Origin: Auanema rhodensis
Taxonomy: Eukaryota; Animalia; Nematoda
DNA: 64,000 nt
Direction: 5' to 3'
Assembly (NCBI GenBank): GCA_964057225.1
Contig: OZ059896.1
Span: forward strand, 22,816,001-22,880,000
Part shown: positions 2,600-62,700 of the stretch, piece by piece
How positions within the stretch are numbered: position 1 is the first letter of the stretch
How the letters are laid out: each line of letters starts with the position of its first letter
Translations under genes and position numbers: made by a program
Notes under the pieces: model-generated
The model's database searches: none
Seen by the model: the letters and a program-made list of their open reading frames with translations, nothing else
Told to the model about the DNA's origin: nothing

Positions 2600-5500
2600 A
2601 TTAATATTGGTTCATGGTAACCATGTCTTTGAAATTTACGTGAACTTTAATTTATGCTAATTAAATGTACACGTGATGTGCACTTGGTATGTAACTCGCT
2701 TCACGTGAAAGATAAAGAGATGCGGTTTTCAAAATTAGATTCCCCATGTCCATATTAGTCTAAAAACAAATTTTTATTGATATTGGTTCATGGTAACCAT
2801 GACTTTGAAATTTACGTGAACTTTAATTTATGCTAATTAAATGTACACGTGATGTGCACTTGGTATGTAACTCGCTTCACGTGAAAGATAAAGAGATGCG
2901 GTTTTTAAAATTAGATTCCCCATGTCCATATTAGTCTAAAAACAAATTTTTATTAATATTGGTTCATGGTAACCATGTCTTTGAAATTTACGTGAACTTT
3001 AATTTATGCTAATTAAATGTACACGTGATGTGCTCTTGGTATGTAACTCGCTTCACGTGAAAGATAAAGAGATGCGGTTTTCAAAATTAGATTCCCCATG
3101 TCCATTTTAGTCTAAAAACAAATTTTTATTGATATTGGTTTATGGTAACCATATCTTTGAAATTTACGTGAACTTTAATTTATGCTAATTAAATGTACAC
3201 GTGATGTGCACTTGGTATGTAACTCGCTTCACGTGAAAGATAAAGAGATGCGGTTTTCAAAATTAGATTCCCCATGTCCATATTAGTCTAAAAACAAATT
3301 TTTATTGATATTGGTTCATGGTAACCATGTTTTTGAAATTTACGTGAACTTTAATTTATGCTAATTAAATGTACACGTGATGTGCACTTGGTATGTAACT
3401 CGCTTCACGTGAAAAATAAAGAGATGCGGTTTTCAAAATTAGATTCCCCATGTCCATATTAGTCTAAAAACAAATTTTTATTGATATTGGTTCATGGTAA
3501 CCATGACTTTGAAATTTACGTGAACTTTAATTTATGCTAATTAAATGTACACGTGATGTGCACTTGGTATGTAACTCGCTTCACGTGAAAGATAAAGAGA
3601 TGCGGTTTTCAAAATTAGATTCCCCATGTCCATATTAGTCTAAAAACAAATTTCTATTGATATTGGTTTATGGTAACCATGTCTTTGAAATTTACGTGAA
3701 CTTTAATTTATGCTAATTAAATGTACACGTGATGTGCACTTGGTATGTAACTCGCTTCACGTGAAAAATAAAAAGATGCGGTTTTCAAAATTAGATTCCC
3801 CATGTCCATATTAGTCTAAAAACAAATTTTTATTAATATTGGTTCATGGTAACCATGTCTTTGAAATTTACGTGAACTTTAATTTATGCTAATTAAATGT
3901 ACACGTGATGTGCACTTGGTATGTAACTCGCTTCACGTGAAAGATAAAAAGATGCAGTTTTCAAAATTAGATTCCCCATGTCCATATTAGTCTAAAAACA
4001 AATTTTTATTGATATTGGTTCATGGTAACCATGTCTTTGAAATTTACGTGAACTTTAATTTATGCTAATTAAATCTACACGTGATGTGCACTTTGTATGT
4101 AACTCGCTTCACGTGAAAAATAAAGAGATGCGGTTTCCAAAATTAGATTCCCCATGTCCATATTAGTCTAAAAACAAATTTTTATTAATATTGGTTCATG
4201 GTAACCATGACTTTGAAATTTACGTGAACTTTAATTTATGCTAATTAAATGTACACGTGATGTGCACTTGGTATGTAACTCGCTTCACGTGAAAGATAAA
4301 AAGATGCAGTTTTCAAAATTAGATTCCCCATGTCCATATTAGTCTAAAAACAAATTTTTATTGATATTGGTTCATGGTAACCATGACTTTGAAATTTACG
4401 TGAACTTTAATTTATGCTAATTAAATGTACACGTGATGTGCACTTGGTATGTAACTCGCTTCACGTGAAAGATAAAGAGATGCGGTTTTCAAAATTAGAT
4501 TCCCCATGTCCATATTAGTCTAAAAACAAATTTCTATTGATATTGGTTTATGGTAACCATGACTTTGAAATTCACGTGAACTTCAATTTATGCTAATTAA
4601 ATGTACACGTGATGTGCACTTGGTATGAAACTCGCTTCCCGTGAAAGATAAAGAGATGCGGTTTTCAAAATTAGATTCCCCAAGTCCATATTAGTCTAAA
4701 AACAATATTTTATTGATATTGGTGCATGGTAACCATGTCTTTGAAATTTACGTGAACTTTAATTTATGCTAATTAAATGTACACGTGATGTGCACTTGGT
4801 ATGTAACTCGCTTCACGTGAAAAATAAAGAGATGCGGTTTTCAAAATTAGATTCCCCATGTCCATATTAGTCTAAAAACAAATTTTTATTAATATTGGTT
4901 CATGGTAACCATGTCTTTGAAATTTACGTGAACTTTAATTTATGCTAATTAAATGTACACGTGATGTGCACTTGGTATGTAACTCGCTTCACGTAAAAGA
5001 TGAAGAGATGCGGTTTTCAAAATTAGATTCCCCATTTCCATATTAGTTTAAAAACAAATTTTTATTGATATTGGTTCATGGTAACCATGACTTTGAAATT
5101 TACGTGAACTTTAATTTATGCTAATTAAATCTACACGTGATGTGCACTTGGTATGTAACTCGCTTCACGTGAAAAATAAAGAGATGCGGTTTTCAAAATT
5201 AGATTCCCCATGTCCATATTAGTCTAAAAACAAATTTTTATTGATATTGGTTCATGTAACCATGACTTTGAAATTTACGTGAACTTTAATTTATGCTAAT
5301 TAAATCTACACGTGATGTGCACTTGGTATGTAACTCGCTTCACGTGAAAAATAAAGAGATGCGGTTTTCAAAATTAGATTCCCCATGTCCATATTAGTCT
5401 AAAAACAAATTTTTATTGATATTGGTTCATGGTAACCATGACTTTGAAATTTACGTGAACTTTAATTTATGCTAATTAAATGTACACGTGATGTGCACTT

Positions 5501-8950: not shown

Positions 8951-11900
8951 GGTAACCATGTCTTTGAAATTTACGTGAACTTTAATTTATGCTAATTAAA
9001 TGTACACGTGATGTGCACTCGGTATGTAACTCGCTTCACGTGAAAAATAAAGAGATGCGGTTTTCAAAATTAGATTCCCCATGTCCATATTAGTCTAAAA
9101 ACAAATTTTTATTAATATTGGTTCATGGTAACCATGTCTTTGAAATTTACGTGAACTTTAATTTATGCTAATTAAATGTACACGTGATGTGCACTTGGTA
9201 TGTAACTCGCTTCACGTGAAAGATAAAGAGATGCGGTTTTCAAAATTAGATTCCCCATGTCCATATTAGTCTAAAAACAAATTTCTATTGATATTGGTTT
9301 ATGGTAACCATGTCTTTGAAATTTACGTGAACTTTAATTTATGCTAATTAAATGTACACGTGATGTGCACTTGGTATGTAACTCGCTTCACGTGAAAAAT
9401 AAAGAGATGCGGTTTTCAAAATTAGATTCCCCATGTCCATATTAGTCTAAAAACAATTTTTTATTAATATTGGTTCATGGTAACCATGTCTTTGAAATTT
9501 ACGTGAACTTTAATTTATGCTAATTAAATGTACACGTGATGTGCACTTGGTATGTAACTCGCTTCACGTGAAAGATGAAGAGATGCGGTTTTCAAAATTA
9601 GATTCCCCATGTCCATATTAGTTTAAAAACAAATTTTTATTGATATTGGTTCATGGTAACCATGACTTTGAAATTTACGTGAACTTTAATTTATGCTAAT
9701 TAAATGTACACGTGATGTGCACTTGGTATGTAACTCGCTTCACGTGAAAGATAAAGAGATGCGGTTTTCAAAATTAGATTCCCCATGTCCATATTAGTCT
9801 AAAAACAAATTTTTATTGATATTGGTTCATGGTAACCATGACTTTGAAATTTACGTGAACTTTAATTTATGCTAATTAAATGTACACGTGATGTGCACTT
9901 GGTATGTAACTCGCTTCACGTGAAAGATAAAGAGATGCGGTTTTCAAAATTAGATTCCCCATGTCCATATTAGTCTAAAAACAAATTTTTATTGATATTG
10001 GTGCATGGTAACCATGACTTTGAAATTTACGTGAACTTTAATTTATGCTAATTAAATGTACACGTGATGTGCACTCGGTATGTAACTCGCTTCACGTGAA
10101 AAATAAAGAGATGCGGTTTTCAAAATTAGATTCCCCATGTCCATATTAGTCTAAAAACAAATTTTTATTGATATTGGTGCATGGTAACCATGACTTTGAA
10201 ATTTACGTGAACTTTAATTTATGCTAATTAAATGTACACGTGATGTGCACTCGGTATGTAACTCGCTTCACGTGAAAAATAAAGAGATGCGGTTTTCAAA
10301 ATTAGATTCCCCATGTCCATATTAGTCTAAAAACAAATTTTTATTAATATTGGTTCATGGTAACCATGTCTTTGAAATTTACGTGAACTTTAATTTATGC
10401 TAATTAAATGTACACGTGATGTGCACTTGGTATGTAACTCGCTTCACGTGAAAGATGAAGAGATGCGGTTTTCAAAATTAGATTCCCCATGTCCATATTA
10501 GTTTAAAAACAAATTTTTATTGATATTGGTTCATGGTAACCATGACTTTGAAATTCACGTGAACTTTAATTTATGCTAATTAAATGTACACGTGATGTGC
10601 ACTTGGTATGTAACTCGCTTCACGTGAAAGATAAAGAGATGCGGTTTTCAAAATTAGATTTCCCATGTCCATATTAGTCTAAAAACAAATTTCTATTGAT
10701 ATTGGTTCATGGTAACCATGACTTTGAAATTTACGTGAACTTTAATTTATGCTAATTAAATGTACACGTGATGTGCACTTGGTATGTAACTCGCTTCACG
10801 TGTAAGATAAAGAGATGCGGTTTTCAAAATTAGATTCCTCATGTCCATATTAGTCTAAAAACAAATTTTTATTGATATTGGTTCATGGTAACCATGACTT
10901 TGAAATTTACGTGAACTTTAATTTATGCTAATTAAATGTACACGTGATGTGCACTTGGTATGTAACTCGCTTCACGTGAAAGATAAAGAGATGCGGTCTT
11001 CAAAATTAGATTCCCCATGTCCATATTAGTCTAAAAACAAATTTCTATCGATATTGGTTTATGGTAACCATGTCTTTGAAATTTACGTGAACTTTAATTT
11101 ATGCTGATTAAATGTACACGTGATGTGCACTTGGTATGTAACTCGCTTCACGTGAAAAATAAAGAGATGCGGTTTTCAAAATTAGATTCCCCATGTCCAT
11201 ATTAGTCTAAAAACAAATTTTTATTAATATTGGTTCATGGTAACCATGTCTTTGAAATTTACGTGAACTTTAATTTATGCTAATTAAATGTACACGTGAT
11301 GTGCACTTGGTATGTAACTCGCTTCACGTGAAAGATAAAAAGATGCAGTTTTCAAAATTAGATTCCCCATGTCCATATTAGTCTAAAAACAAATTTTTAT
11401 TGATATTGGTTCATGGTAACCATGTCTTTGAAATTTACGTGAACTTTAATTTATGCTAATTAAATCTACACGTGATGTGCACTTGGTATGTAACTCGCTT
11501 CACGTGAAAAATAAAGAGATGCGGTTTTCAAAATTAGATTCCCCATGTCCATATTAGTCTAAAAACAAATTTTTATTAATATTGGTTCATGGTAACCATG
11601 ACTTTGAAATTTACGTGAACTTTAATTTATGCTAATTAAATGTACACGTGATGTGCACTTGGTGTGTAACTCGCTTCACGTGAAAGATAAAGAAATGCGG
11701 TTTTCAAAATTAGATTCCCCATGTCCATATTAGTCTAAAAACAAATTTTTATTGATATTGGTTCATGGTAACCATGACTTTGAAATTTACGTGAACTTTA
11801 ATTTATGCTAATTAAATCTACACGTGATGTGCACTTGGTATGTAACTCGCTTCACGTGAAAAATAAAGAGATGCGGTTTTCAAAATTAGATTCCCCATGT

Positions 11901-14900
11901 CCATATTAGTCTAAAAACAAATTTTTATTGATATTGGTTCATGTAACCATGACTTTGAAATTTACGTGAACTTTAATTTATGCTAATTAAATCTACACGT
12001 GATGTGCACTTGGTATGTAACTCGCTTCACGTGAAAAATAAAGAGATGCGGTTTTCAAAATTAGATTCCCCATGTCCATATTAGTCTAAAAACAAATTTT
12101 TATTGATATTGGTTCATGGTAACCATGACTTTGAAATTTACGTGAACTTTAATTTATGCTAATTAAATGTACACGTGATGTGCACTTGGTATGTAACTCG
12201 CTTCACGTGAAAGATAAAGAGATGCGGTTTTCAAAATTAGATTCCCCATGTCCATATTAGTCTAAAAACAAATTTTTATTGATATTGGTTCATGGTAACC
12301 ATGACTTTGAAATTTACGTGAACTTTAATTTATGCTAATTAAATGTACACGTGATGTGCACTTGGTATGTAACTCGCTTCACGTGAAAGATAAAGAGATG
12401 CGGTTTTCAAAATTAGATTCCCCATGTCCATATTAGTCTAAAAACAAATTTTTATTGATATTGGTTCATGTAACCATGACTTTGAAATTTACGTGAACTT
12501 TAATTTATGCTAATTAAATCTACACGTGATGTGCACTTGGTATGTAACTCGCTTCACTTGAAAGATAAAGAGATGCGGTTTTCAAAATTAGATTCCCCAT
12601 GTCCATATTAGTCTAAAAACAAATTTTTATTGATATTGGTTCATGGTAACCATGACTTTGAAATTTACGTGAACTTTAATTTATGCTAATTAAATGTACA
12701 CGTGATGTGCACTTGGTATGTAACTCGCTTCACGTGAAAGATAAAGAGATGCGGTTTTCAAAATTAGATTCCCCATGTCTATATTAGTCTAAAAACAAAT
12801 TTTTATTGATATTGGTTGATGGTAACCATGACTTTGAAATTTACGTGAACTTTAATTTATGCTAATTAAATGTACACGTGATGTGCACTTGGTATGTAAC
12901 TCGCTTCACGTGAAAAATAAAGAGATGCGGCTTTCAAAATTAGATTCCCCATGTCCATATTAGTCTAAAAACAAATTTTTATTAATATTGGTTCATGGTA
13001 ACCATGTCTTTGAAATTTACGTGAACTTTAATTTATGCTAATTAAATGTACACGTGATGTGCACTTGGTATGTAACTCGCTTCACGTGAAAGATAAAGAG
13101 ATGCGGTTTTCAAAATTAGATTCCCCATGTCCATATTGGTCTAAAAACAAATTTTTATTGATATTGGTTCATGGTAACCATGACTTTGAAATTTACGTGA
13201 ACTTTAATTTATGCTAATTAAATGTACACGTGATGTGCACTTGGTATGTAACTCGCTTCACGTGAAAGATAAAGAGATGCGGTTTTCAAAATTAGATTCC
13301 CCATGTCCATATTAGTCTAAAAACAAATTTTTATTGATATTGGTTCATGGTAACCATGTCTTTGAAATTTACGTGAACTTTAATTTATGCTACTTAAATG
13401 TACACGTGATGTGCACTTGGTATGTAACTCGCTTCACGTGAAAAATAAAGAGATGCGGTTTTCAAAATTAGATTCCCCATGTCCATATTAGTCTAAAAAC
13501 AAATTTTTATTAATATTGGTTCATGGTAACCATGTCTTTGAAATTTACGTGAACTTTAATTTATGCTAATTAAATGTACACGTGATGTGCACTTGGTATG
13601 TAACTCGCTTCACGTGAAAGATAAAGAGATGCGGTTTTCAAAATTAGATTCCCCATGTCCATATTAGTCTAAAAACAAATTTTTATTAATATTGGTTCAT
13701 GGTAACCATGTCTTTGAAATTTACGTGAACTTTAATTTATGCTAATTAAATGTACACGTGATGTGCACTTGGTATGTAACTCGCTTCACGTGAAAGATAA
13801 AGAGATGCGGTTTTCAAAATTAGATTCCCCATGTCCATATTAGTCTAAAAACAAATTTTTATTGATATTGGTTCATGGTAACCATGACTTTGAAATTTAC
13901 GTGAACTTTAATTTATGCTAATTAAATGTACACGTGATGTGCACTTGGTATGTAACTCGCTTCACGTGAAAGATAAAGAGATGCGGTTTTCAAAATTAGA
14001 TTCCCCATGTCCATATTAGTCTAAAAACAAATTTTTATTAATATTGGTTCATGGTAACCATGTCTTTGAAATTTACGTGAACTTTAATTTATGCTAATTA
14101 AATGTACACGTGATGTGCACTTGGTATGTAACTCGCTTCACGTGAAAGATAAAGAGATGCGGTTTTCAAAATTAGATTCCCCATGTCCATATTAGTCTAA
14201 AAACAAATTTTTATTAATATTGGTTCATGGTAACCATGTCTTTGAAATTTACGTGAACTTTAATTTATGCTAATTAAATGTACACGTGATGTGCACTTGG
14301 TATGTAACTCGCTTCACGTGAAAGATAAAGAGATGCGGTTTTCAAAATTAGATTCCCCATGTCCATATTAGTCTAAAAACAAATTTTTATTGATATTGGT
14401 TCATGGTAACCATGACTTTGAAATTTACGTGAACTTTAATTTATGCTAATTAAATGTACACGTGATGTGCACTTGGTATGTAACTCGCTTCACGTGAAAG
14501 ATAAAGAGATGCGGTTTTCAAAATTAGATTCCCCATGTCCATATTAGTCTAAAAACAAATTTTTATTGATATTGGTTCATGGTAACCATGTCTTTGAAAT
14601 TTACGTGAACTTTAATTTATGCTAATTAAATGTACACGTGATGTGCACTTGGTATGTAACTCGCTTCACGTGAAAAATAAAGAGATGCGGTTTTCAAAAT
14701 TAGATTCCCCATGTCCATATTAGTCTAAAAACAAATTTTTATTAATATTGGTTCATGGTAACCATGTCTTTGAAATTTACGTGAACTTTAATTTATGCTA
14801 ATTAAATGTACACGTGATGTGCACTTGGTATGTAACTCGCTTCACGTGAAAGATAAAGAGATGCGGTTTTCAAAATTAGATTCCCCATGTCCATATTAGT

Positions 14901-19300: not shown

Positions 19301-22300
19301 CTAAAAACAAATTTTTATTGATATTGGTTGATGGTAACCATGACTTTGAAATTTACGTGAACTTTAATTTATGCTAATTAAATGTACACGTGATGTGCAC
19401 TTGGTATGTAACTCGCTTCACGTGAAAGATAAAGAGATGCGGTTTTCAAAATTAGATTCCCCATGTCCATATTAGTCTAAAAACAAATTTTTATTAATAT
19501 TGGTTCATGGTAACCATGTCTTTGAAATTTACGTGAACTTTAATTTATGCTAATTAAATGTACACGTGATGTGCACTTGGTATGTAACTCGCTTCACGTG
19601 AAAGATAAAGAGATGCGCTTTTCAAAATTAGATTCCCCATGTCCATATTAGTCTAAAAACAAATTTTTATTAATATTGGTTCATGGTAACCATGTCTTTG
19701 AAATTTACGTGAACTTTAATTTATGCTAATTAAATGTACACGTGATGTGCACTTGGTATGTAACTCGCTTCACGTGAAAGATAAAGAGATGCGGTTTTCA
19801 AAATTAGATTCCCCATGTCCATATTAGTCTAAAAACAAATTTTTATTGATATTGGTTCATGGTAACCATGACTTTGAAATTTACGTGAACTTTAATTTAT
19901 GCTAATTAAATGTACACGTGATGTGCACTTGGTATGTAACTCGCTTCACGTGAAAGATAAAGAGATGCGGTTTTCAAAATTAGATTCCCCATGTCCATAT
20001 TAGTCTAAAAACAAATTTTTATTGATATTGGTTGATGGTAACCATGACTTTGAAATTTACGTGAACTTTAATTTATGCTAATTAAATGTACACGTGATGT
20101 GCACTTGGTATGTAACTCGCTTCACGTGAAAGATAAAGAGATGCGGTTTTCAAAATTAGATTCCCCATGTCCATATTAGTTTAAAAACAAATTTTTATTA
20201 ATATTGGTTCATGGTAACCATGTCTTTGAAATTTACGTGAACTCTAATTTATGCTAATTAAATGTACACGTGATGTGCACTTGGTATGTAACTCGCTTCA
20301 CGTGAAAGAGAAAGAGATGCGGTTTTCAAAATTAGATTCCCCATGTCCATATTAGTCTAAAAACAAATTTTTATTGATATTGGTTCATGGTAACCATGAC
20401 TTTGAAATTTACGTGAACTTTAATTTATGCTAATTAAATTTACACGTGATGTGCACTTGGTATGTAACTCGCTTCACGTGGAAGATAAAGAGATGCGGTT
20501 TTCAAAATTAGATTCCCCATGTCCATATTAGTCTAAAAACAAATTTTTATTGATATTGGTTCATGGTAACCATGACTTTGAAATTTACGTGAACTTTAAT
20601 TTATGCTAATTAAATGTACACGTGATGTGCACTTGGTATGTAACTCGCTTCACGTGAAAGATAAAGAGAGGCGGTTTTCAAAATTAGATTCCCCATGTCC
20701 ATATTAGTCTAAAAACAAATTTTTATTAATATTGGTTCATGGTAACCATGTCTTTGAAATTTACGTGATCTTTAATTTATGCTAATTAAATGTACACGTG
20801 ATGTGCACTTGGTATGTAACTCGCTTCACGTGAAAGATAAAGAGATGCGGTTTTCAAAATTAGATTCCCCATATCCATATTAGTCTAGAAACAAATTTCT
20901 ATTGATATTGGTTTATGGTAACCATATCTTTGAAATTTACGTGAACTTTAATTTATGCTAATTAAATGTACACGTGATGTGCACTTGGTATGTAACTCGC
21001 TTCACGTGAAAGATAAAGAGATGCGGTTTTCAAAATTAGATTCCCCATGTCCATATTAGTCTAGAAACAAATTTCTATTGATATTGGTTTATGGTAACCA
21101 TATCTTTGAAATTTACGTGAACTTTAATTTATGCTAATTAAATGTACACGTGATGTGCACTTGGTATGTAACTCGCTTCACGTGAAAGATAAAGAGATGC
21201 GGTTTTCAAAATTAGATTCCCCATGTCCATATTAGTCTAAAAACAAATTTTTATTGATATTGGTTGATGGTAACCATGACTTTGAAATTTACGTGAACTT
21301 TAATTTATGCTAATTAAATGTACACGTGATGTGCACTTGGTATGTAACTCGCTTCACGTGAAAGATAAAGAGATGCGGTTTTCAAAATTAGATTCCCCAT
21401 GTCCATATTAGTCTAAAAACAAATTTTTATTAATATTGGTTCATGGTAACCATGTCTTTGAAATTTACGTGAACTTTAATTTATGCTAATTAAATGTACA
21501 CGTGATGTGCACTTGGTATGTAACTCGCTTCACGTGAAAGATAAAGAGATGCGGTTTTCAAAATTAGATTCCCCATGTCCATATTAGTCTAAAAACAAAT
21601 TTTTATTGATATTGGTTCATGGTAACCATGACTTTGAAATTTACGTGAACTTTAATTTATGCTAATTAAATGTACACGTGATGTGCACTTGGTATGTAAC
21701 TCGCTTCACGTGAAAGATAAAGAGATGCGGTTTTCAAAATTAGATTCCCCATGTCCATATTAGTCTAAAAACAAATTTTTATTGATATTGGTTCATGGTA
21801 ACCATGACTTTGAAATTTACGTGAACTTTAATTTATGCTAATTAAATGTACACGTGATGTGCACTTGGTATGTAACTCGCTTCACGTGAAAGATAAAGAG
21901 ATGCGGTTTTCAAAATTAGATTCCCCATGTCCATATTAGTCTAAAAACAAATTTTTATTGATATTGGTTCATGGTAACCATGACTTTGAAATTTACGTGA
22001 ACTTTAATTTATGCTAATTAAATGTACACGTGATGTGCACTTGGTATGTAACTCGCTTCACGTGAAAGATAAAGAGATGCGGTTTTCAAAATTAGATTCC
22101 CCATGTCCATATTAGTCTAAAAACAAATTTCTATCGATATTGGTTTATGGTAACCATGTCTTTGAAATTTACGTGAACTTTAATTTATGCTAATTAAATC
22201 TACACGTGATGTGCACTTGGTATGTAACTCGCTTCACGTGAAAAATAAAGAGATACGGTTTTCAAAATTAGATTCCCCATGTCCATATTAGTCTAAAAAC

Positions 22301-25300
22301 AAATTTTTATTGATATTGGTTCATGGTAACCATGACTTTGAAATTTACGTGAACTTTAATTTATGCTAATTAAATCTACACGTGATGTGCACTTGGTATG
22401 TAACTCGCTTCACGTGAAAGATAAAGAGATGCGGTTTTCAAAATTAGATTCCCCATGTCCATATTAGTCTAAAAACAAATTTTTATTGATATTGGTTCAT
22501 GGTAACCATGACTTTGAAATTTACGTGAACTTTAATTTATGCTAATTAAATGTACACGTGATGTGCACTTGGTATGTAACTCGCTTCACGTGAAAGATAA
22601 AGAGATGCGGTTTTCAAAATTAGATTCCCCATGTCCATATTAGCCTAAAAACAAATTTTTATTGATATTGGTTGATGGTAACCATGACTTTGAAATTTAC
22701 GTGAACTTTAATTTATGCTAATTAAATGTACACGTGATGTGCACTTGGTATGTAACTCGCTTCACGTGAAAGATAAAGAGATGCGGTTTTCAAAATTAGA
22801 TTCCCCATGTCCATATTAGTCTAAAAACAAATTTTTATTAATATTGGTTCATGGTAACCATGTCTTTGAAATTTACGTGAACTTTAATTTATGCTAATTA
22901 AATGTACACGTGATGTGCACTTGGTATGTAACTCGCTTCACGTGAAAGATAAAGAGATGCGCTTTTCAAAATTAGATTCCCCATGTCCATATTAGTCTAA
23001 AAACAAATTTTTATTAATATTGGTTCATGGTAACCATGACTTTGAAATTTACGTGAACTTTAATTTATGCTAATTAAATGTACACGTGATGTGCACTTGG
23101 TATGTAACTCGCTTCACGTGAAAGATGAAGAGATGCGGTTTTCAAAATTAGATTCCCCATGTCCATATTAGTCTAAAAACAAATTTTTATTGATATTGGT
23201 TGATGGTAACCATGACTTTGAAATTTACGTGAACTTTAATTTATGCTAATTAAATGTACACGTGATGTGCACTTGGTATGTAACTCGCTTCACGTGAAAG
23301 ATAAAGAGATGCGGTTTTCAAAATTAGATTCCCCATGTCCATATTAGTTTAAAAACAAATTTTTATTAATATTGGTTCATGGTAACCATGTCTTTGAAAT
23401 TTACGTGAACTCTAATTTATGCTAATTAAATGTACACGTGATGTGCACTTGGTATGTAACTCGCTTCACGTGAAAGAGAAAGAGATGCGGTTTTCAAAAT
23501 TAGATTCCCCATGTCCATATTAGTCTAAAAACAAATTTTTATTGATATTGGTTCATGGTAACCATGACTTTGAAATTTACGTGAACTTTAATTTATGCTA
23601 ATTAAATTTACACGTGATGTGCACTTGGTATGTAACTCGCTTCACGTGAAAGATAAAGAGATGCGGTTTTCAAAATTAGATTCCCCATGTCCATATTAGT
23701 CTAAAAACAAATTTTTATTGATATTGGTTCATGGTAACCATGACTTTGAAATTTACGTGAACTTTAATTTATGCTAATTAAATGTACACGTGATGTGCAC
23801 TTGGTATGTAACTCGCTTCACGTGAAAGATAAAGAGAGGCGGTTTTCAAAATTAGATTCCCCATGTCCATATTAGTCTAAAAACAAATTTTTATTAATAT
23901 TGGTTCATGGTAACCATGTCTTTGAAATTTACGTGATCTTTAATTTATGCTAATTAAATGTACACGTGATGTGCACTTGGTATGTAACTCGCTTCACGTG
24001 AAAGATAAAGAGATGCGGTTTTCAAAATTAGATTCCCCATATCCATATTAGTCTAGAAACAAATTTCTATTGATATTGGTTTATGGTAACCATATCTTTG
24101 AAATTTACGTGAACTTTAATTTATGCTAATTAAATGTACACGTGATGTGCACTTGGTATGTAACTCGCTTCACGTGAAAGATAAAGAGATGCGGTTTTCA
24201 AAATTAGATTCCCCATGTCCATATTAGTCTAGAAACAAATTTCTATTGATATTGGTTTATGGTAACCATATCTTTGAAATTTACGTGAACTTTAATTTAT
24301 GCTAATTAAATGTACACGTGATGTGCACTTGGTATGTAACTCGCTTCACGTGAAAGATAAAGAGATGCGGTTTTCAAAATTAGATTCCCCATGTCCATAT
24401 TAGTCTAAAAACAAATTTTTATTGATATTGGTTGATGGTAACCATGACTTTGAAATTTACGTGAACTTTAATTTATGCTAATTAAATGTACACGTGATGT
24501 GCACTTGGTATGTAACTCGCTTCACGTGAAAGATAAAGAGATGCGGTTTTCAAAATTAGATTCCCCATGTCCATATTAGTCTAAAAACAAATTTTTATTA
24601 ATATTGGTTCATGGTAACCATGTCTTTGAAATTTACGTGAACTTTAATTTATGCTAATTAAATGTACACGTGATGTGCACTTGGTATGTAACTCGCTTCA
24701 CGTGAAAGATAAAGAGATGCGCTTTTCAAAATTAGATTCCCCATGTCCATATTAGTCTAAAAACAAATTTTTATTAATATTGGTTCATGGTAACCATGTC
24801 TTTGAAATTTACGTGAACTTTAATTTATGCTAATTAAATGTACACGTGATGTGCACTTGGTATGTAACTCGCTTCACGTGAAAGATAAAGAGATGCGGTT
24901 TTCAAAATTAGATTCCCCATGTCCATATTAGTCTAAAAACAAATTTTTATTGATATTGGTTCATGGTAACCATGACTTTGAAATTTACGTGAACTTTAAT
25001 TTATGCTAATTAAATGTACACGTGATGTGCACTTGGTATGTAACTCGCTTCACGTGAAAGATAAAGAGATGCGGTTTTCAAAATTAGATTCCCCATGTCC
25101 ATATTAGTCTAAAAACAAATTTTTATTGATATTGGTTGATGGTAACCATGACTTTGAAATTTACGTGAACTTTAATTTATGCTAATTAAATGTACACGTG
25201 ATGTGCACTTGGTATGTAACTCGCTTCACGTGAAAGATAAAGAGATGCGGTTTTCAAAATTAGATTCCCCATGTCCATATTAGTTTAAAAACAAATTTTT

Positions 25301-28300
25301 ATTAATATTGGTTCATGGTAACCATGTCTTTGAAATTTACGTGAACTCTAATTTATGCTAATTAAATGTACACGTGATGTGCACTTGGTATGTAACTCGC
25401 TTCACGTGAAAGAGAAAGAGATGCGGTTTTCAAAATTAGATTCCCCATGTCCATATTAGTCTAAAAACAAATTTTTATTGATATTGGTTCATGGTAACCA
25501 TGACTTTGAAATTTACGTGAACTTTAATTTATGCTAATTAAATTTACACGTGATGTGCACTTGGTATGTAACTCGCTTCACGTGGAAGATAAAGAGATGC
25601 GGTTTTCAAAATTAGATTCCCCATGTCCATATTAGTCTAAAAACAAATTTTTATTGATATTGGTTCATGGTAACCATGACTTTGAAATTTACGTGAACTT
25701 TAATTTATGCTAATTAAATGTACACGTGATGTGCACTTGGTATGTAACTCGCTTCACGTGAAAGATAAAGAGAGGCGGTTTTCAAAATTAGATTCCCCAT
25801 GTCCATATTAGTCTAAAAACAAATTTTTATTAATATTGGTTCATGGTAACCATGTCTTTGAAATTTACGTGATCTTTAATTTATGCTAATTAAATGTACA
25901 CGTGATGTGCACTTGGTATGTAACTCGCTTCACGTGAAAGATAAAGAGATGCGGTTTTCAAAATTAGATTCCCCATATCCATATTAGTCTAGAAACAAAT
26001 TTCTATTGATATTGGTTTATGGTAACCATATCTTTGAAATTTACGTGAACTTTAATTTATGCTAATTAAATGTACACGTGATGTGCACTTGGTATGTAAC
26101 TCGCTTCACGTGAAAGATAAAGAGATGCGGTTTTCAAAATTAGATTCCCCATGTCCATATTAGTCTAGAAACAAATTTCTATTGATATTGGTTTATGGTA
26201 ACCATATCTTTGAAATTTACGTGAACTTTAATTTATGCTAATTAAATGTACACGTGATGTGCACTTGGTATGTAACTCGCTTCACGTGAAAGATAAAGAG
26301 ATGCGGTTTTCAAAATTAGATTCCCCATGTCCATATTAGTCTAAAAACAAATTTTTATTGATATTGGTTGATGGTAACCATGACTTTGAAATTTACGTGA
26401 ACTTTAATTTATGCTAATTAAATGTACACGTGATGTGCACTTGGTATGTAACTCGCTTCACGTGAAAGATAAAGAGATGCGGTTTTCAAAATTAGATTCC
26501 CCATGTCCATATTAGTCTAAAAACAAATTTTTATTAATATTGGTTCATGGTAACCATGTCTTTGAAATTTACGTGAACTTTAATTTATGCTAATTAAATG
26601 TACACGTGATGTGCACTTGGTATGTAACTCGCTTCACGTGAAAGATAAAGAGATGCGGTTTTCAAAATTAGATTCCCCATGTCCATATTAGTCTAAAAAC
26701 AAATTTTTATTGATATTGGTTCATGGTAACCATGACTTTGAAATTTACGTGAACTTTAATTTATGCTAATTAAATGTACACGTGATGTGCACTTGGTATG
26801 TAACTCGCTTCACGTGAAAGATAAAGAGATGCGGTTTTCAAAATTAGATTCCCCATGTCCATATTAGTCTAAAAACAAATTTTTATTGATATTGGTTCAT
26901 GGTAACCATGACTTTGAAATTTACGTGAACTTTAATTTATGCTAATTAAATGTACACGTGATGTGCACTTGGTATGTAACTCGCTTCACGTGAAAGATAA
27001 AGAGATGCGGTTTTCAAAATTAGATTCCCCATGTCCATATTAGTCTAAAAACAAATTTTTATTGATATTGGTTCATGGTAACCATGACTTTGAAATTTAC
27101 GTGAACTTTAATTTATGCTAATTAAATGTACACGTGATGTGCACTTGGTATGTAACTCGCTTCACGTGAAAGATAAAGAGATGCGGTTTTCAAAATTAGA
27201 TTCCCCATGTCCATATTAGTCTAAAAACAAATTTCTATCGATATTGGTTTATGGTAACCATGTCTTTGAAATTTACGTGAACTTTAATTTATGCTAATTA
27301 AATCTACACGTGATGTGCACTTGGTATGTAACTCGCTTCACGTGAAAAATAAAGAGATACGGTTTTCAAAATTAGATTCCCCATGTCCATATTAGTCTAA
27401 AAACAAATTTTTATTGATATTGGTTCATGGTAACCATGACTTTGAAATTTACGTGAACTTTAATTTATGCTAATTAAATCTACACGTGATGTGCACTTGG
27501 TATGTAACTCGCTTCACGTGAAAGATAAAGAGATGCGGTTTTCAAAATTAGATTCCCCATGTCCATATTAGTCTAAAAACAAATTTTTATTGATATTGGT
27601 TCATGGTAACCATGACTTTGAAATTTACGTGAACTTTAATTTATGCTAATTAAATGTACACGTGATGTGCACTTGGTATGTAACTCGCTTCACGTGAAAG
27701 ATAAAGAGATGCGGTTTTCAAAATTAGATTCCCCATGTCCATATTAGCCTAAAAACAAATTTTTATTGATATTGGTTGATGGTAACCATGACTTTGAAAT
27801 TTACGTGAACTTTAATTTATGCTAATTAAATGTACACGTGATGTGCACTTGGTATGTAACTCGCTTCACGTGAAAGATAAAGAGATGCGGTTTTCAAAAT
27901 TAGATTCCCCATGTCCATATTAGTCTAAAAACAAATTTTTATTAATATTGGTTCATGGTAACCATGTCTTTGAAATTTACGTGAACTTTAATTTATGCTA
28001 ATTAAATGTACACGTGATGTGCACTTGGTATGTAACTCGCTTCACGTGAAAGATAAAGAGATGCGCTTTTCAAAATTAGATTCCCCATGTCCATATTAGT
28101 CTAAAAACAAATTTTTATTAATATTGGTTCATGGTAACCATGACTTTGAAATTTACGTGAACTTTAATTTATGCTAATTAAATGTACACGTGATGTGCAC
28201 TTGGTATGTAACTCGCTTCACGTGAAAGATGAAGAGATGCGGTTTTCAAAATTAGATTCCCCATGTCCATATTAGTCTAAAAACAAATTTTTATTGATAT

Positions 28301-29508
28301 TGGTTGATGGTAACCATGACTTTGAAATTTACGTGAACTTTAATTTATGCTAATTAAATGTACACGTGATGTGCACTTGGTATGTAACTCGCTTCACGTG
28401 AAAGATAAAGAGATGCGGTTTTCAAAATTAGATTCCCCATGTCCATATTAGTTTAAAAACAAATTTTTATTAATATTGGTTCATGGTAACCATGTCTTTG
28501 AAATTTACGTGAACTCTAATTTATGCTAATTAAATGTACACGTGATGTGCACTTGGTATGTAACTCGCTTCACGTGAAAGAGAAAGAGATGCGGTTTTCA
28601 AAATTAGATTCCCCATGTCCATATTAGTCTAAAAACAAATTTTTATTGATATTGGTTCATGGTAACCATGACTTTGAAATTTACGTGAACTTTAATTTAT
28701 GCTAATTAAATTTACACGTGATGTGCACTTGGTATGTAACTCGCTTCACGTGAAAGATAAAGAGATGCGGTTTTCAAAATTAGATTCCCCATGTCCATAT
28801 TAGTCTAAAAACAAATTTTTATTGATATTGGTTCATGGTAACCATGACTTTGAAATTTACGTGAACTTTAATTTATGCTAATTAAATGTACACGTGATGT
28901 GCACTTGGTATGTAACTCGCTTCACGTGAAAGATAAAGAGAGGCGGTTTTCAAAATTAGATTCCCCATGTCCATATTAGTCTAAAAACAAATTTTTATTA
29001 ATATTGGTTCATGGTAACCATGTCTTTGAAATTTACGTGATCTTTAATTTATGCTAATTAAATGTACACGTGATGTGCACTTGGTATGTAACTCGCTTCA
29101 CGTGAAAGATAAAGAGATGCGGTTTTCAAAATTAGATTCCCCATATCCATATTAGTCTAGAAACAAATTTCTATTGATATTGGTTTATGGTAACCATATC
29201 TTTGAAATTTACGTGAACTTTAATTTATGCTAATTAAATGTACACGTGATGTGCACTTGGTATGTAACTCGCTTCACGTGAAAGATAAAGAGATGCGGTT
29301 TTCAAAATTAGATTCCCCATGTCCATATTAGTCTAGAAACAAATTTCTATTGATATTGGTTTATGGTAACCATATCTTTGAAATTTACGTGAACTTTAAT
29401 TTATGCTAATTAAATGTACACGTGATGTGCACTTGGTATGTAACTCGCTTCACGTGAAAGATAAAGAGATGCGGTTTTCAAAATTAGATTCCCCATGTCC
29501 ATATTAGT
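19301..29508. repeat. Tandem duplication of a 29-monomer (5104 bp) higher-order unit
   Basis: Rare variants recur at +5104: CGTGGAAG 20481/25585, GCGCTT 19618/24722 and 22962/28066, TAGCCT 22644/27748, GATGAAG 23127/28231, GAGAGGC 20670/25774 and 23838/28942. Boundaries are approximate. Confidence 0.9.
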
Positions 29509-29689
29509 CTAAAAACAAATTTTTATTGATATTGGTTGATGGTAACCATGACTTTGAAATTTACGTGAACTTTAATTTATGCTAATTAAATGTACACGTG
29601 ATGTGCACTTGGTATGTAACTCGCTTCACGTGAAAGATAAAGAGATGCGGTTTTCAAAATTAGATTCCCCATGTCCATATTAGTCAAAA

Positions 29690-59797: not shown

Positions 59798-62700
59798 TCT
59801 TTGAAATTTACGTGAACTTTAATTTATGCTAATTAAATGTACACGTGATGTGCACTTGGTATGTAACTCGCTTGAAAGATAAAGAGATGCGGTTTTCAAA
59901 ATTAGATTCCCCATGTCCATATTAGTCTAAAAACAAATTTTTATTGATATTGGTTCATGGTAACCATGACTTTGAAATTTACGTGAACTTTAATTTATGC
60001 TAATTAAATGTACACGTGATGTGCACTTGGTATGTAACTCGCTTCACGTGAAAGATAAAGAGATGCGGTTTTCAAAATTAGATTCCCCATGTCCATATTA
60101 GTCTAGAAACAAATTTTTATTAATATTGGTTCATGGTAACCATGTCTTTGAAATTTACGTGAACTTTAATTTATGCTAATTAAAAGTACACGTGATGTGC
60201 ACTTGGTATGTAACTCGCTTGAAAGATAAAGAGATGCGGTTTTCAAAATTAGATTCCCCATGTCCATATTAGTCTAAAAACAAATTTTTATTGATATTGG
60301 TTCATGGTAACCATGACTTTGAAATTTACGTGAATTTTAATTTATGCTAATTAAATGTACACGTGATGTGCACTTGGTATGTAACTCGCTTCACGTGAAA
60401 GATAATGAGATGCGGTTTTCAAAATTAGATTCCCCATGTCCATATTAGTCTAAAAACAAATTTTTATTGATATTGGTTCATGGTAACCATGACTTTGAAA
60501 TTTACGTGAACTTTAATTTATGCTAATTAAATGTACACGTGATGTGCACTTGGTATGTAACTCGCTTCACGTGAAAGATAAAGAGATGCGGTTTTCAAAA
60601 TTAGATTCCCCATGTCCATATTAGTCTAAAAACAAATTTTTATTGATATTGGTTCATGGTAACCATGACTTTGAAATTTACGTGAACTTTAATTTATGCT
60701 AATTGAATGTACACGTGATGTGCACTTGGTATGTAACTCGCTTCACGTGAAAGATAAAGAGATGCGGTTTTCAAAATTAGATTCCTCATGTCCATATTAG
60801 TCTAAAAACAAATTTTTATTAATATTGGTTCATGGTAACCATGTCTTTGAAATTTACGTGAACATTAATTTATGCTAATTAAATGTACACGTGATGTGCA
60901 CTTGGTATGTAACTCGCTTCACGTGAAAGATAAAGAGATGTGGTTTTCAAAATTAGATTCCCCATGTCCATATTAGTCTAAAAACAAATTTTTATTGATA
61001 TTAGTTCATGGTAACCATGACTTTGAAATTTACGTGAACTTTAATTTATGCTAATTAAATGTACACGTGATGTGCACTTGGTATGTAACTCGCTTCACGT
61101 GAAAGATAAAGAGATGCGGTTTTCAAAATTAGATTCCCCATGTCCATATTAGTCTAAAAACAAATTTTTATTAATATTGGTTCATGGTAACCATGTCTTT
61201 GAAATTTACGTGAACTTTAATTTATGCTAATTAAATGTACACGTGATGTGCACTTGGTATGTAACTCGCTTGAAAGATAAAGAGATGCGGTTTTCAAAAT
61301 TAGATTCCCCATGTCCATATTAGTCTAAAAACAAATTTTTATTGATATTGGTTCATGGTAACCATGACTTTGAAATTTACGTGAACTTTAATTTATGCTA
61401 ATTAAATGTACACGTGATGTGCACTTGGTATGTAACTCGCTTCACGTGAAAGATAAAGAGATGCGGTTTTCAAAATTAGATTCCCCATGTCCATATTAGT
61501 CTAGAAACAAATTTTTATTAATATTGGTTCATGGTAACCATGTCTTTGAAATTTACGTGAACTTTAATTTATGCTAATTAAAAGTACACGTGATGTGCAC
61601 TTGGTATGTAACTCGCTTGAAAGATAAAGAGATGCGGTTTTCAAAATTAGATTCCCCATGTCCATATTAGTCTAAAAACAAATTTTTATTGATATTGGTT
61701 CATGGTAACCATGACTTTGAAATTTACGTGAATTTTAATTTATGCTAATTAAATGTACACGTGATGTGCACTTGGTATGTAACTCGCTTCACGTGAAAGA
61801 TAATGAGATGCGGTTTTCAAAATTAGATTCCCCATGTCCATATTAGTCTAAAAACAAATTTTTATTGATATTGGTTCATGGTAACCATGACTTTGAAATT
61901 TACGTGAACTTTAATTTATGCTAATTAAATGTACACGTGATGTGCACTTGGTATGTAACTCGCTTCACGTGAAAGATAAAGAGATGCGGTTTTCAAAATT
62001 AGATTCCCCATGTCCATATTAGTCTAAAAACAAATTTTTATTGATATTGGTTCATGGTAACCATGACTTTGAAATTTACGTGAACTTTAATTTATGCTAA
62101 TTGAATGTACACGTGATGTGCACTTGGTATGTAACTCGCTTCACGTGAAAGATAAAGAGATGCGGTTTTCAAAATTAGATTCCTCATGTCCATATTAGTC
62201 TAAAAACAAATTTTTATTAATATTGGTTCATGGTAACCATGTCTTTGAAATTTACGTGAACATTAATTTATGCTAATTAAATGTACACGTGATGTGCACT
62301 TGGTATGTAACTCGCTTCACGTGAAAGATAAAGAGATGTGGTTTTCAAAATTAGATTCCCCATGTCCATATTAGTCTAAAAACAAATTTTTATTGATATT
62401 AGTTCATGGTAACCATGACTTTGAAATTTACGTGAACTTTAATTTATGCTAATTAAATGTACACGTGATGTGCACTTGGTATGTAACTCGCTTCACGTGA
62501 AAGATAAAGAGATGCGGTTTTCAAAATTAGATTCCCCATGTCCATATTAGTCTAAAAACAAATTTTTATTAATATTGGTTCATGGTAACCATGTCTTTGA
62601 AATTTACGTGAACTTTAATTTATGCTAATTAAATGTACACGTGATGTGCACTTGGTATGTAACTCGCTTGAAAGATAAAGAGATGCGGTTTTCAAAATTA

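Follow-up and report, generated by a model that had tools for sequence, protein, structure and literature searches.

The stretch considered here comprises 64,000 nucleotides of contig OZ059896.1 of the nematode Auanema rhodensis (positions 22,816,001 to 22,880,000 of the forward strand; hereafter the window), and the whole of it, from 1 to 64000, is occupied by one uninterrupted tandem array of a 176-base-pair (bp) satellite, in which an earlier note had pointed out paired substitutions that keep short palindromes intact. Tandem Repeats Finder reported a single array with a period of 176, 364.1 copies, 97% matches and hardly any indels; the guanine-cytosine content of 0.31 (31%) is flat along the window, and the anchor spacing and the alignment of the monomers displayed the same continuity. 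The monomers were cut at an invariant 12-mer and then aligned with MAFFT, which yielded 363 whole monomers, of which 346 measure 176 bp, 14 measure 171 bp and 3 measure 175 bp, arranged in a long head-to-tail array of near-identical units as is usual for block-amplified satellite subfamilies. Position 1 of the monomer corresponds to window coordinate 20751 in the copy for which the paired changes were described; the array, blocks and monomers are given on the forward (+) strand, and the palindromes and motifs carry no strand.

The described copy (20751–20926) carries the full derived haplotype, which includes A1T, A19T, G123A, A138G, T149C, C164T and G176A, and the segment 20869–20926 represents its positions 119–176. 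Two perfect palindromes lie in this segment. Dyad A occupies positions 136–151 (20886–20901 in this copy), with 6-bp arms and a loop of 4 nucleotides (nt), where the consensus TAAAAA-CAAA-TTTTTA has become TAGAAA-CAAA-TTTCTA by replacement of A:T with G:C at 138/149. Dyad B, a 6-1-6 palindrome at positions 164–176 (20914–20926), has changed from CATGGT-A-ACCATG to TATGGT-A-ACCATA, with T:A replacing C:G at 164/176. A third pairing was claimed between CCATA at positions 119–123 (20869–20873), formed by G123A, and positions 164–168 across a 40-nt loop; this allele is located at exactly 20873, 24041, 25977 and 29145 and represents one event in four copies. Other monomers with the haplotype start at 524, 1047 and 1399, and lie between 20.7 and 49.6 kilobases (kb). 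All of the substitutions that the earlier note had cited were present at the coordinates it gave, and the one-sided or single-pair copies that it had placed near 3654, 60106, 1738 and 3141 were recovered as well.

The alleles differ widely in copy number among the 363 monomers, with 44 copies of A138G, 65 of T149C, 72 of C164T, 21 of C164G, 57 of G176A and 4 of G123A. A138G and T149C occur together in 41 monomers, and C164T and G176A in 57. One-sided states were observed for both pairs, with T149C lacking A138G in 24 monomers, A138G alone in 3 and C164T lacking G176A in 15, such that broken and compensated monomers number 27 and 41 at 138/149, and 36 and 57 at 164/176. The existence of such intermediates had been recognised in the earlier note, but their frequency had been under-counted (T149C without A138G was reported from one copy and occurs in 24), and its inventory of breaks was incomplete, as C164G, which breaks 164/176 in 21 monomers with no change at the partner, went unmentioned. 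At sites 123/138/149/164/176 the consensus haplotype GATCG is carried by 265 monomers, followed by GGCTA (37), GATGG (21), GACTG (13), GACTA (10), GATTA (6), AGCTA (4), GGTCG (3), GATTG (2), GACCG (1) and TATCG (1). Representatives of these states are the doubly uncompensated intermediate with T149C and C164T only at 3506–3681 (13 monomers in the window); the uncompensated break of dyad B by C164G at 12655–12830 (21 monomers); C164T with G176A and no change at 138/149 at 2978–3153 (6 monomers); and A138G alone at 59969–60144, whose three copies (59969, 61367 and 62765) represent one event copied at an 8-monomer period.

Every monomer with the 138/149 pair also carries the 164/176 pair (41/41), and the presence of one four-site haplotype in all of these double-pair monomers indicates that each compensation is essentially one event, which bears out the caution in the earlier note that few independent events underlie the pattern. 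Nested intermediates of the haplotype are present in 2, 13, 6, 10, 37 and 4 copies. Two identical blocks of 29 monomers (5.1 kb), 19343–24446 and 24447–29550, together span 19343–29550 and were detected as a run of 29 identical monomers at lag 29; at other lags, 13 and 11 successive monomers were identical. The 29-monomer duplication doubled the copies of G123A and of the neighbouring haplotype, and the four G123A copies are thus due to block duplications. The identity of the two 5.1-kb blocks points to a duplication that either happened very recently or was introduced by the assembly. All four gametes are present at 149/176 and at 138/149, and mosaic monomers exist, such as A19T-G92A-G99A-T149C-C164T-G176A, together indicating frequent exchange between monomer types. 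On a tree with the five sites masked, each common allele needs several changes (8–15), a figure that recombination and few informative sites prevent from being read as a number of independent mutations.

Logan contigs of four runs (organisms A to D) were aligned to one 176-letter consensus monomer, a semi-quantitative comparison at the level of alleles, in which depth is approximate, rare variants are dropped and site linkage is not readable. The satellite is hugely abundant in the contigs of organisms A, B and C, where A138G, T149C, C164T, G176A and A1T all fall below the 1% listing threshold (A1T reaches 49% in the window), and this allele-level evidence indicates that the haplotype is local to the array. 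The common stem variants in these contigs are one-sided, such as T150C at about 2% of depth, with partner A137G; C164A at up to 4%, with partner G176T; T163G at 42–51%, with partner A1C in the next monomer; C119T at 5–17%, with partner G168A; and C119G at about 3%, with partner G168C; none of these partners is listed at 1% or more in organisms A to C. At least two major subfamilies are present in the genome, the array of the window being a private variant of the 163T type. At position 163 (for example window 21793), T163G is carried by only 6/363 window monomers against 42–51% of depth in the contigs, and G154A reaches 28% in the window against about 3% genome-wide. Run X11 (organism D) contains a single satellite contig of 206 bases, identical to the consensus, at depth 29, on window 21690–21865; organisms A to C show millions, and the contig of organism D represents either a trace or contamination, or a satellite present in very few copies. 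When contigs of metagenomes and of prokaryotic genomes were scanned with exact patterns for linked monomers beyond the window, no matches were obtained, and literature searches returned nothing relevant on a 176-bp nematode satellite or on the monomer's own sequence, the only hit of one of them being an unrelated plant-virus paper.

The monomer types of the window are marked by linked diagnostic substitutions and recur through multi-monomer duplications, as the types of a satellite subfamily do. With confidence that is about evenly balanced, the haplotype is regarded as an ordinary subfamily of monomers, local in its distribution, within a 176-bp satellite that is very abundant, and the complementarity of its paired changes as most likely a product of chance. 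Point substitutions would have accumulated stepwise, and presumably neutrally, on one monomer lineage, each essentially once, probably in the order C164T, then T149C and G176A, then A138G, then G123A; the resulting monomers were multiplied by duplication of multi-monomer blocks, and the types were reshuffled by unequal exchange or conversion. No structure would have been maintained in this process, the later substitutions having most likely hit the dyad partners of two earlier ones by coincidence, and the coincidence may have been helped by an AT-rich and dyad-dense unit, by a possible hotspot at the C of CATGG, and by after-the-fact picking among many satellite windows. The array agrees with known satellite monomer subfamilies and with higher-order or block-amplified structure, as produced by unequal exchange and local homogenisation, in its head-to-tail monomers that are 97% alike, in types that are defined by linked diagnostic substitutions and recur at 29, 18, 11 and 8 monomers, in perfect multi-kb block copies, and in array-common alleles that are rare genome-wide. 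It differs from satellite higher-order arrays in that no single regular higher-order period is present, and several overlapping block duplications with mosaic monomers are found instead.

The share of chance was assessed by a permutation in which the 86 distinct substitution variants were moved to random positions with their carriers kept. At least two compensated pairs arose with P = 0.002–0.008 for stems of at least 6 bp with loops of up to 10 nt, with P = 0.02 for 5 bp and loop 10, and with P = 0.07–0.10 for 4 bp and loop 20, all of these values being nominal, as the stem definition was chosen after the data had been seen and the case was selected among very many scanned windows. When long loops are allowed, the observed three pairs have P = 0.03, and at least one pair is found in 48% of permutations, so that G123A:C164T, a 5-bp stem with a 40-nt loop and a single event, adds little. 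The permutation that the earlier note had called for thus leaves a marginal excess only (P = 0.002–0.1 by stem definition), and the compensated pairs exceed chance only marginally. The covariation that it had read into the paired changes is without significant signal once the tree is taken into account, the sign tests between partner sites giving p = 0.125–1 on few independent contrasts. Pairs changed on both sides number 3 against 2.7 in shuffles, a value reached by 349/500 of them (63 distinct 89-nt segments); only the cell-level covariation measures exceed the shuffles, and those are inflated by relatedness. The replacements resemble those of covarying hairpins of the R-scape type in exchanging a Watson-Crick pair for a different one, A:T to G:C and C:G to T:A, but such hairpins display many independent events per pair, whereas one origin per pair, abundant non-paired states, marginally stable hairpins and no significant tree-corrected signal were observed here, and several independent compensatory events per structure were not found.

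Several observations weigh against chance and a local subfamily as the whole explanation. If variants were placed uniformly, tight stems would nominally be unlikely to contain two compensated pairs (P = 0.002–0.02). G176A never occurs off the C164T background (0/57), just as the earlier note had remarked, and A138G is found mostly on T149C (41 against 3 monomers). All four substitutions are located within 39 bp, for which our own calculation gives p of about 0.04 under uniform placement. Moreover, linkage is seen within the 64-kb window only, the contig evidence being at the level of alleles.

The alternative that best survives these observations, although it appears clearly the less likely one, is quasi-palindrome template switching with no selection, in which T149C and C164T made the two dyads imperfect and a brief switch of the replicating strand copied the changes into the opposite arms to give A138G and G176A, while G123A might have been copied likewise, with TATGG as the source arm or with CCATA, close by at 125–129, as the source. 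Each dyad was indeed first imperfect (24 and 15 intermediate copies) and its arms then became exactly complementary again; G176A is confined to C164T monomers, the permutation P is low for tight stems, all three CATGG/CCATG changes give the TATGG/CCATA form that is already present at 125–129, and template switching has been described to fix base pairing of existing stems in two steps (PMC8794818, PMC5453318). The likeness to template-switch compensation, known as Ripley-type quasi-palindrome correction and from Loytynoja and Goldman (2017, PMC5453318) and Monttinen and Loytynoja (2022, PMC8794818), lies in this two-step loss and restoration, with both steps visible as haplotypes. However, multi-base parallel changes are the diagnostic of a template switch (PMC8794818), and they are absent here, each step being a single base, separable as a haplotype and indistinguishable from a point mutation, with no loop inversion or stem extension, and occurring once per dyad. 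The variants of the window reveal no general bias toward repair either, as dyad-repairing substitutions constitute 21/86 (24%) of those observed against 132/528 (25%) of those possible (p = 0.59), dyad-perfecting variants 9/34 (26%) of the genome-wide list against a null of 0.245, and stabilising variants 18.6% of those observed against 20.6% of those possible. No partner change reaches 1% for the abundant one-sided T163G, C119T, C164A and T150C, correction is likewise absent from the 21 copies of C164G and from the monomers with A138G only, and the arm that would have been corrected differs, being the 5' arm in dyad A and the 3' arm in dyad B. Template-switch correction, which leaves no general signature, is a reasonable but undemonstrated rival account of the two events.

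The C of all three CATGG motifs (positions 123, 164 and 176; for example 20873, 20914 and 20926) is variable on either strand, with C164 changed to T and G in the window and to A genome-wide, G123 to A and T, and G176 to A; five window events fall on these three sites against about 1.5 expected. All the CATGG/CCATG transitions yield the CCATA/TATGG form of positions 125–129, which could reflect a hotspot or short templated conversion. The two partner positions of a palindrome stand in identical contexts, each on its own strand, and a hotspot tied to that context would therefore look like compensation. Such a symmetric hotspot was considered and rejected as an explanation in its own right, C164T, G176A and G123A all being below 1% genome-wide and C164A occurring without G176T, and was kept as a minor contributor only.

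A broader version of the argument, in which a real palindrome-restoring process (efficient template switching or selection for extrudable dyads) acts on short perfect dyads and the replacements are its footprints, appears improbable; if true, the same pattern would recur in other arrays in linked genome-wide data. Slightly less probable still is that selection keeps dyads A and B pairing, as a cruciform or as a hairpin of single-stranded DNA or satellite RNA, with one-sided changes being mildly deleterious and rescued by the partner. In its favour are the two replacements of one Watson-Crick pair by another, which affect the two perfect dyads that are tightest in this portion of the monomer, the location of dyad A on the monomer-wide symmetry axis, a mild enrichment of short dyads over dinucleotide shuffles (p = 0.02–0.04), as in dyad-enriched satellites, and the regain of part of the lost stability by the double changes under DNA parameters. 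A proposal that dyad symmetry of satellites is important to centromeres has also been made (Kasinathan and Henikoff 2018, PMC5889037), and the monomer shares with those dyad-symmetric, non-B-prone centromeric satellites the mild enrichment of dyads below 10 bp and a monomer-wide symmetry axis, but its fold z-scores are not significant and its nematode host may be holocentric.

The density of dyads in the monomer is itself informative. Stems of at least 5 bp with loops of up to 20 nt cover 76/176 positions, against 47 ± 16 in dinucleotide shuffles, and provide 50 pairs against 28.6 ± 11.6 (p = 0.03), and stems of at least 6 bp with loops of up to 10 nt provide 20 pairs against 5.2 (p = 0.02), so that the monomer is a palindrome-dense unit, an outcome that the earlier note had named as speaking against its structural reading. 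Stem-breaking states are also at least as frequent as stem-preserving ones, a second outcome that it had named in this sense: the three tightest stems display 18 distinct broken states against 2 compensated ones (273 monomer-pair cells for the former and 98 for the latter), only one-sided changes are common in these stems in the contigs of three organisms, and the longest short-loop stem (21–27/34–40) has 7 broken states and no compensation. These two findings, palindrome density and frequent stem-breaking states, leave selection on a maintained structure not supported. Broken haplotypes were moreover amplified to 13, 10 and 21 copies, and each compensation goes back to a single event. Variants that destabilise the local DNA fold constitute 39.5% of those observed and 39.6% of all 528 substitutions (Mann-Whitney p = 0.97), those with at least 4 copies are if anything more destabilising, and no deficit of pair-breaking states relative to expectation was found among the window variants or in the genome-wide variant list.

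The predicted hairpins are themselves marginal. Dyad A is not predicted in the RNA consensus, its energies being 0 for the consensus, 0 for one-sided states and −2.4 kcal/mol for both changes; the corresponding DNA values are −2.1, 0 for either single change and −2.7 kcal/mol. For dyad B the RNA energies are −5.8 (consensus), −3.6 (one-sided, U.G) and −3.5 kcal/mol (both, U:A), indicating that G176A gains nothing over the U.G intermediate, and the DNA energies are −3.9, −1.3 and −2.7 kcal/mol. Whole-monomer fold z-scores of −1.7 (DNA) and of −1.9 and −1.4 (RNA, two strands) are not significant. In addition, C164 would need G176 as its partner in one structure and G123 in another, and the two structures exclude each other; a search of 1.8 kb of the array against Rfam returned no family, the top match (E = 0.49) being far under threshold; and among the runs listed, none is on record as RNA. 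Arms of 5–6 bp are very short for cruciform extrusion, and selection on one monomer among very many copies would be negligible. The paired changes thus do not amount to good evidence that any DNA or RNA structure is conserved.

Assembly or base-calling artefacts, of which strand-symmetric errors in palindromes would mimic paired changes, are a very unlikely source of the haplotype. The four alleles do fall below the 1% listing threshold in contigs on the consensus monomer, and the perfect copy of the 5.1-kb block could have been created by the assembly; however, the alleles occur in fixed combinations, at multi-monomer periods and linked to distinct variants at other monomer positions, context-driven errors would strike all identical monomers alike, and 93% of the words sampled from 20223–23390, a stretch with two haplotype monomers, are present in run X1. 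Least probable of all is that a dimeric protein binds at the palindromes and that symmetric changes keep these sites twofold symmetric: CATGGT-A-ACCATG is a perfect 6-1-6 palindrome and its derived form is again perfectly symmetric, but a second half-site change would leave the original half-site unrestored and move the site further from the sequence that is read, which makes the reading illogical, and the one-sided changes C164G, C164A and T163G are common.

Real covariation would constitute rare direct evidence that constraint or drive keeps DNA or RNA hairpins in a satellite monomer, and would thereby contribute to the discussion of how non-B DNA relates to the function of satellites and centromeres. 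On the present evidence, the case of a local subfamily spread by duplication demonstrates how block duplication in a dyad-dense repeat makes one or two coincidences resemble a common structure-preserving haplotype, and it provides a usable null, as about a quarter of all possible substitutions in the monomer 'repair' some quasi-palindrome.

Several minor features of the monomer were also observed. The whole monomer displays dyad symmetry (for example at 21631–21806), with 42/88 position pairs complementary around two axes, one at 55.5 (GTGCAC) and one at 143.5 (loop of dyad A), against 24.8 ± 4.3 for other symmetry axes and, for the best axis of shuffled monomers, a mean of 36.3 and a 95th percentile of 40; the site pairs 138/149 and 123/164 fall on the monomer-wide axis, and 164/176 on a local axis at 170. 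All G176A monomers (57/57) precede a T at position 1 of the next monomer (for example 20926–20927); the consensus A1 of the next monomer pairs with T163 and extends palindrome B to 7 bp, and half of the window monomers are without this seventh pair. The 175-bp monomers, located at 5090–5264, 11777–11951 and 12304–12478, miss one G of CATGG inside palindrome B (TTCATGTAACCATG), a further uncompensated disruption of it in 3 copies. The 171-bp monomers are without five bases at positions 76–80, changing CTTCACGTGAAAG to CTTGAAAG with loss of CACGTG, and are found at 177–347 and at the starts 700, 1927, 41871, 50314, 55765, 56288, 56811, 59798, 60145, 61196, 61543, 62594 and 62941.

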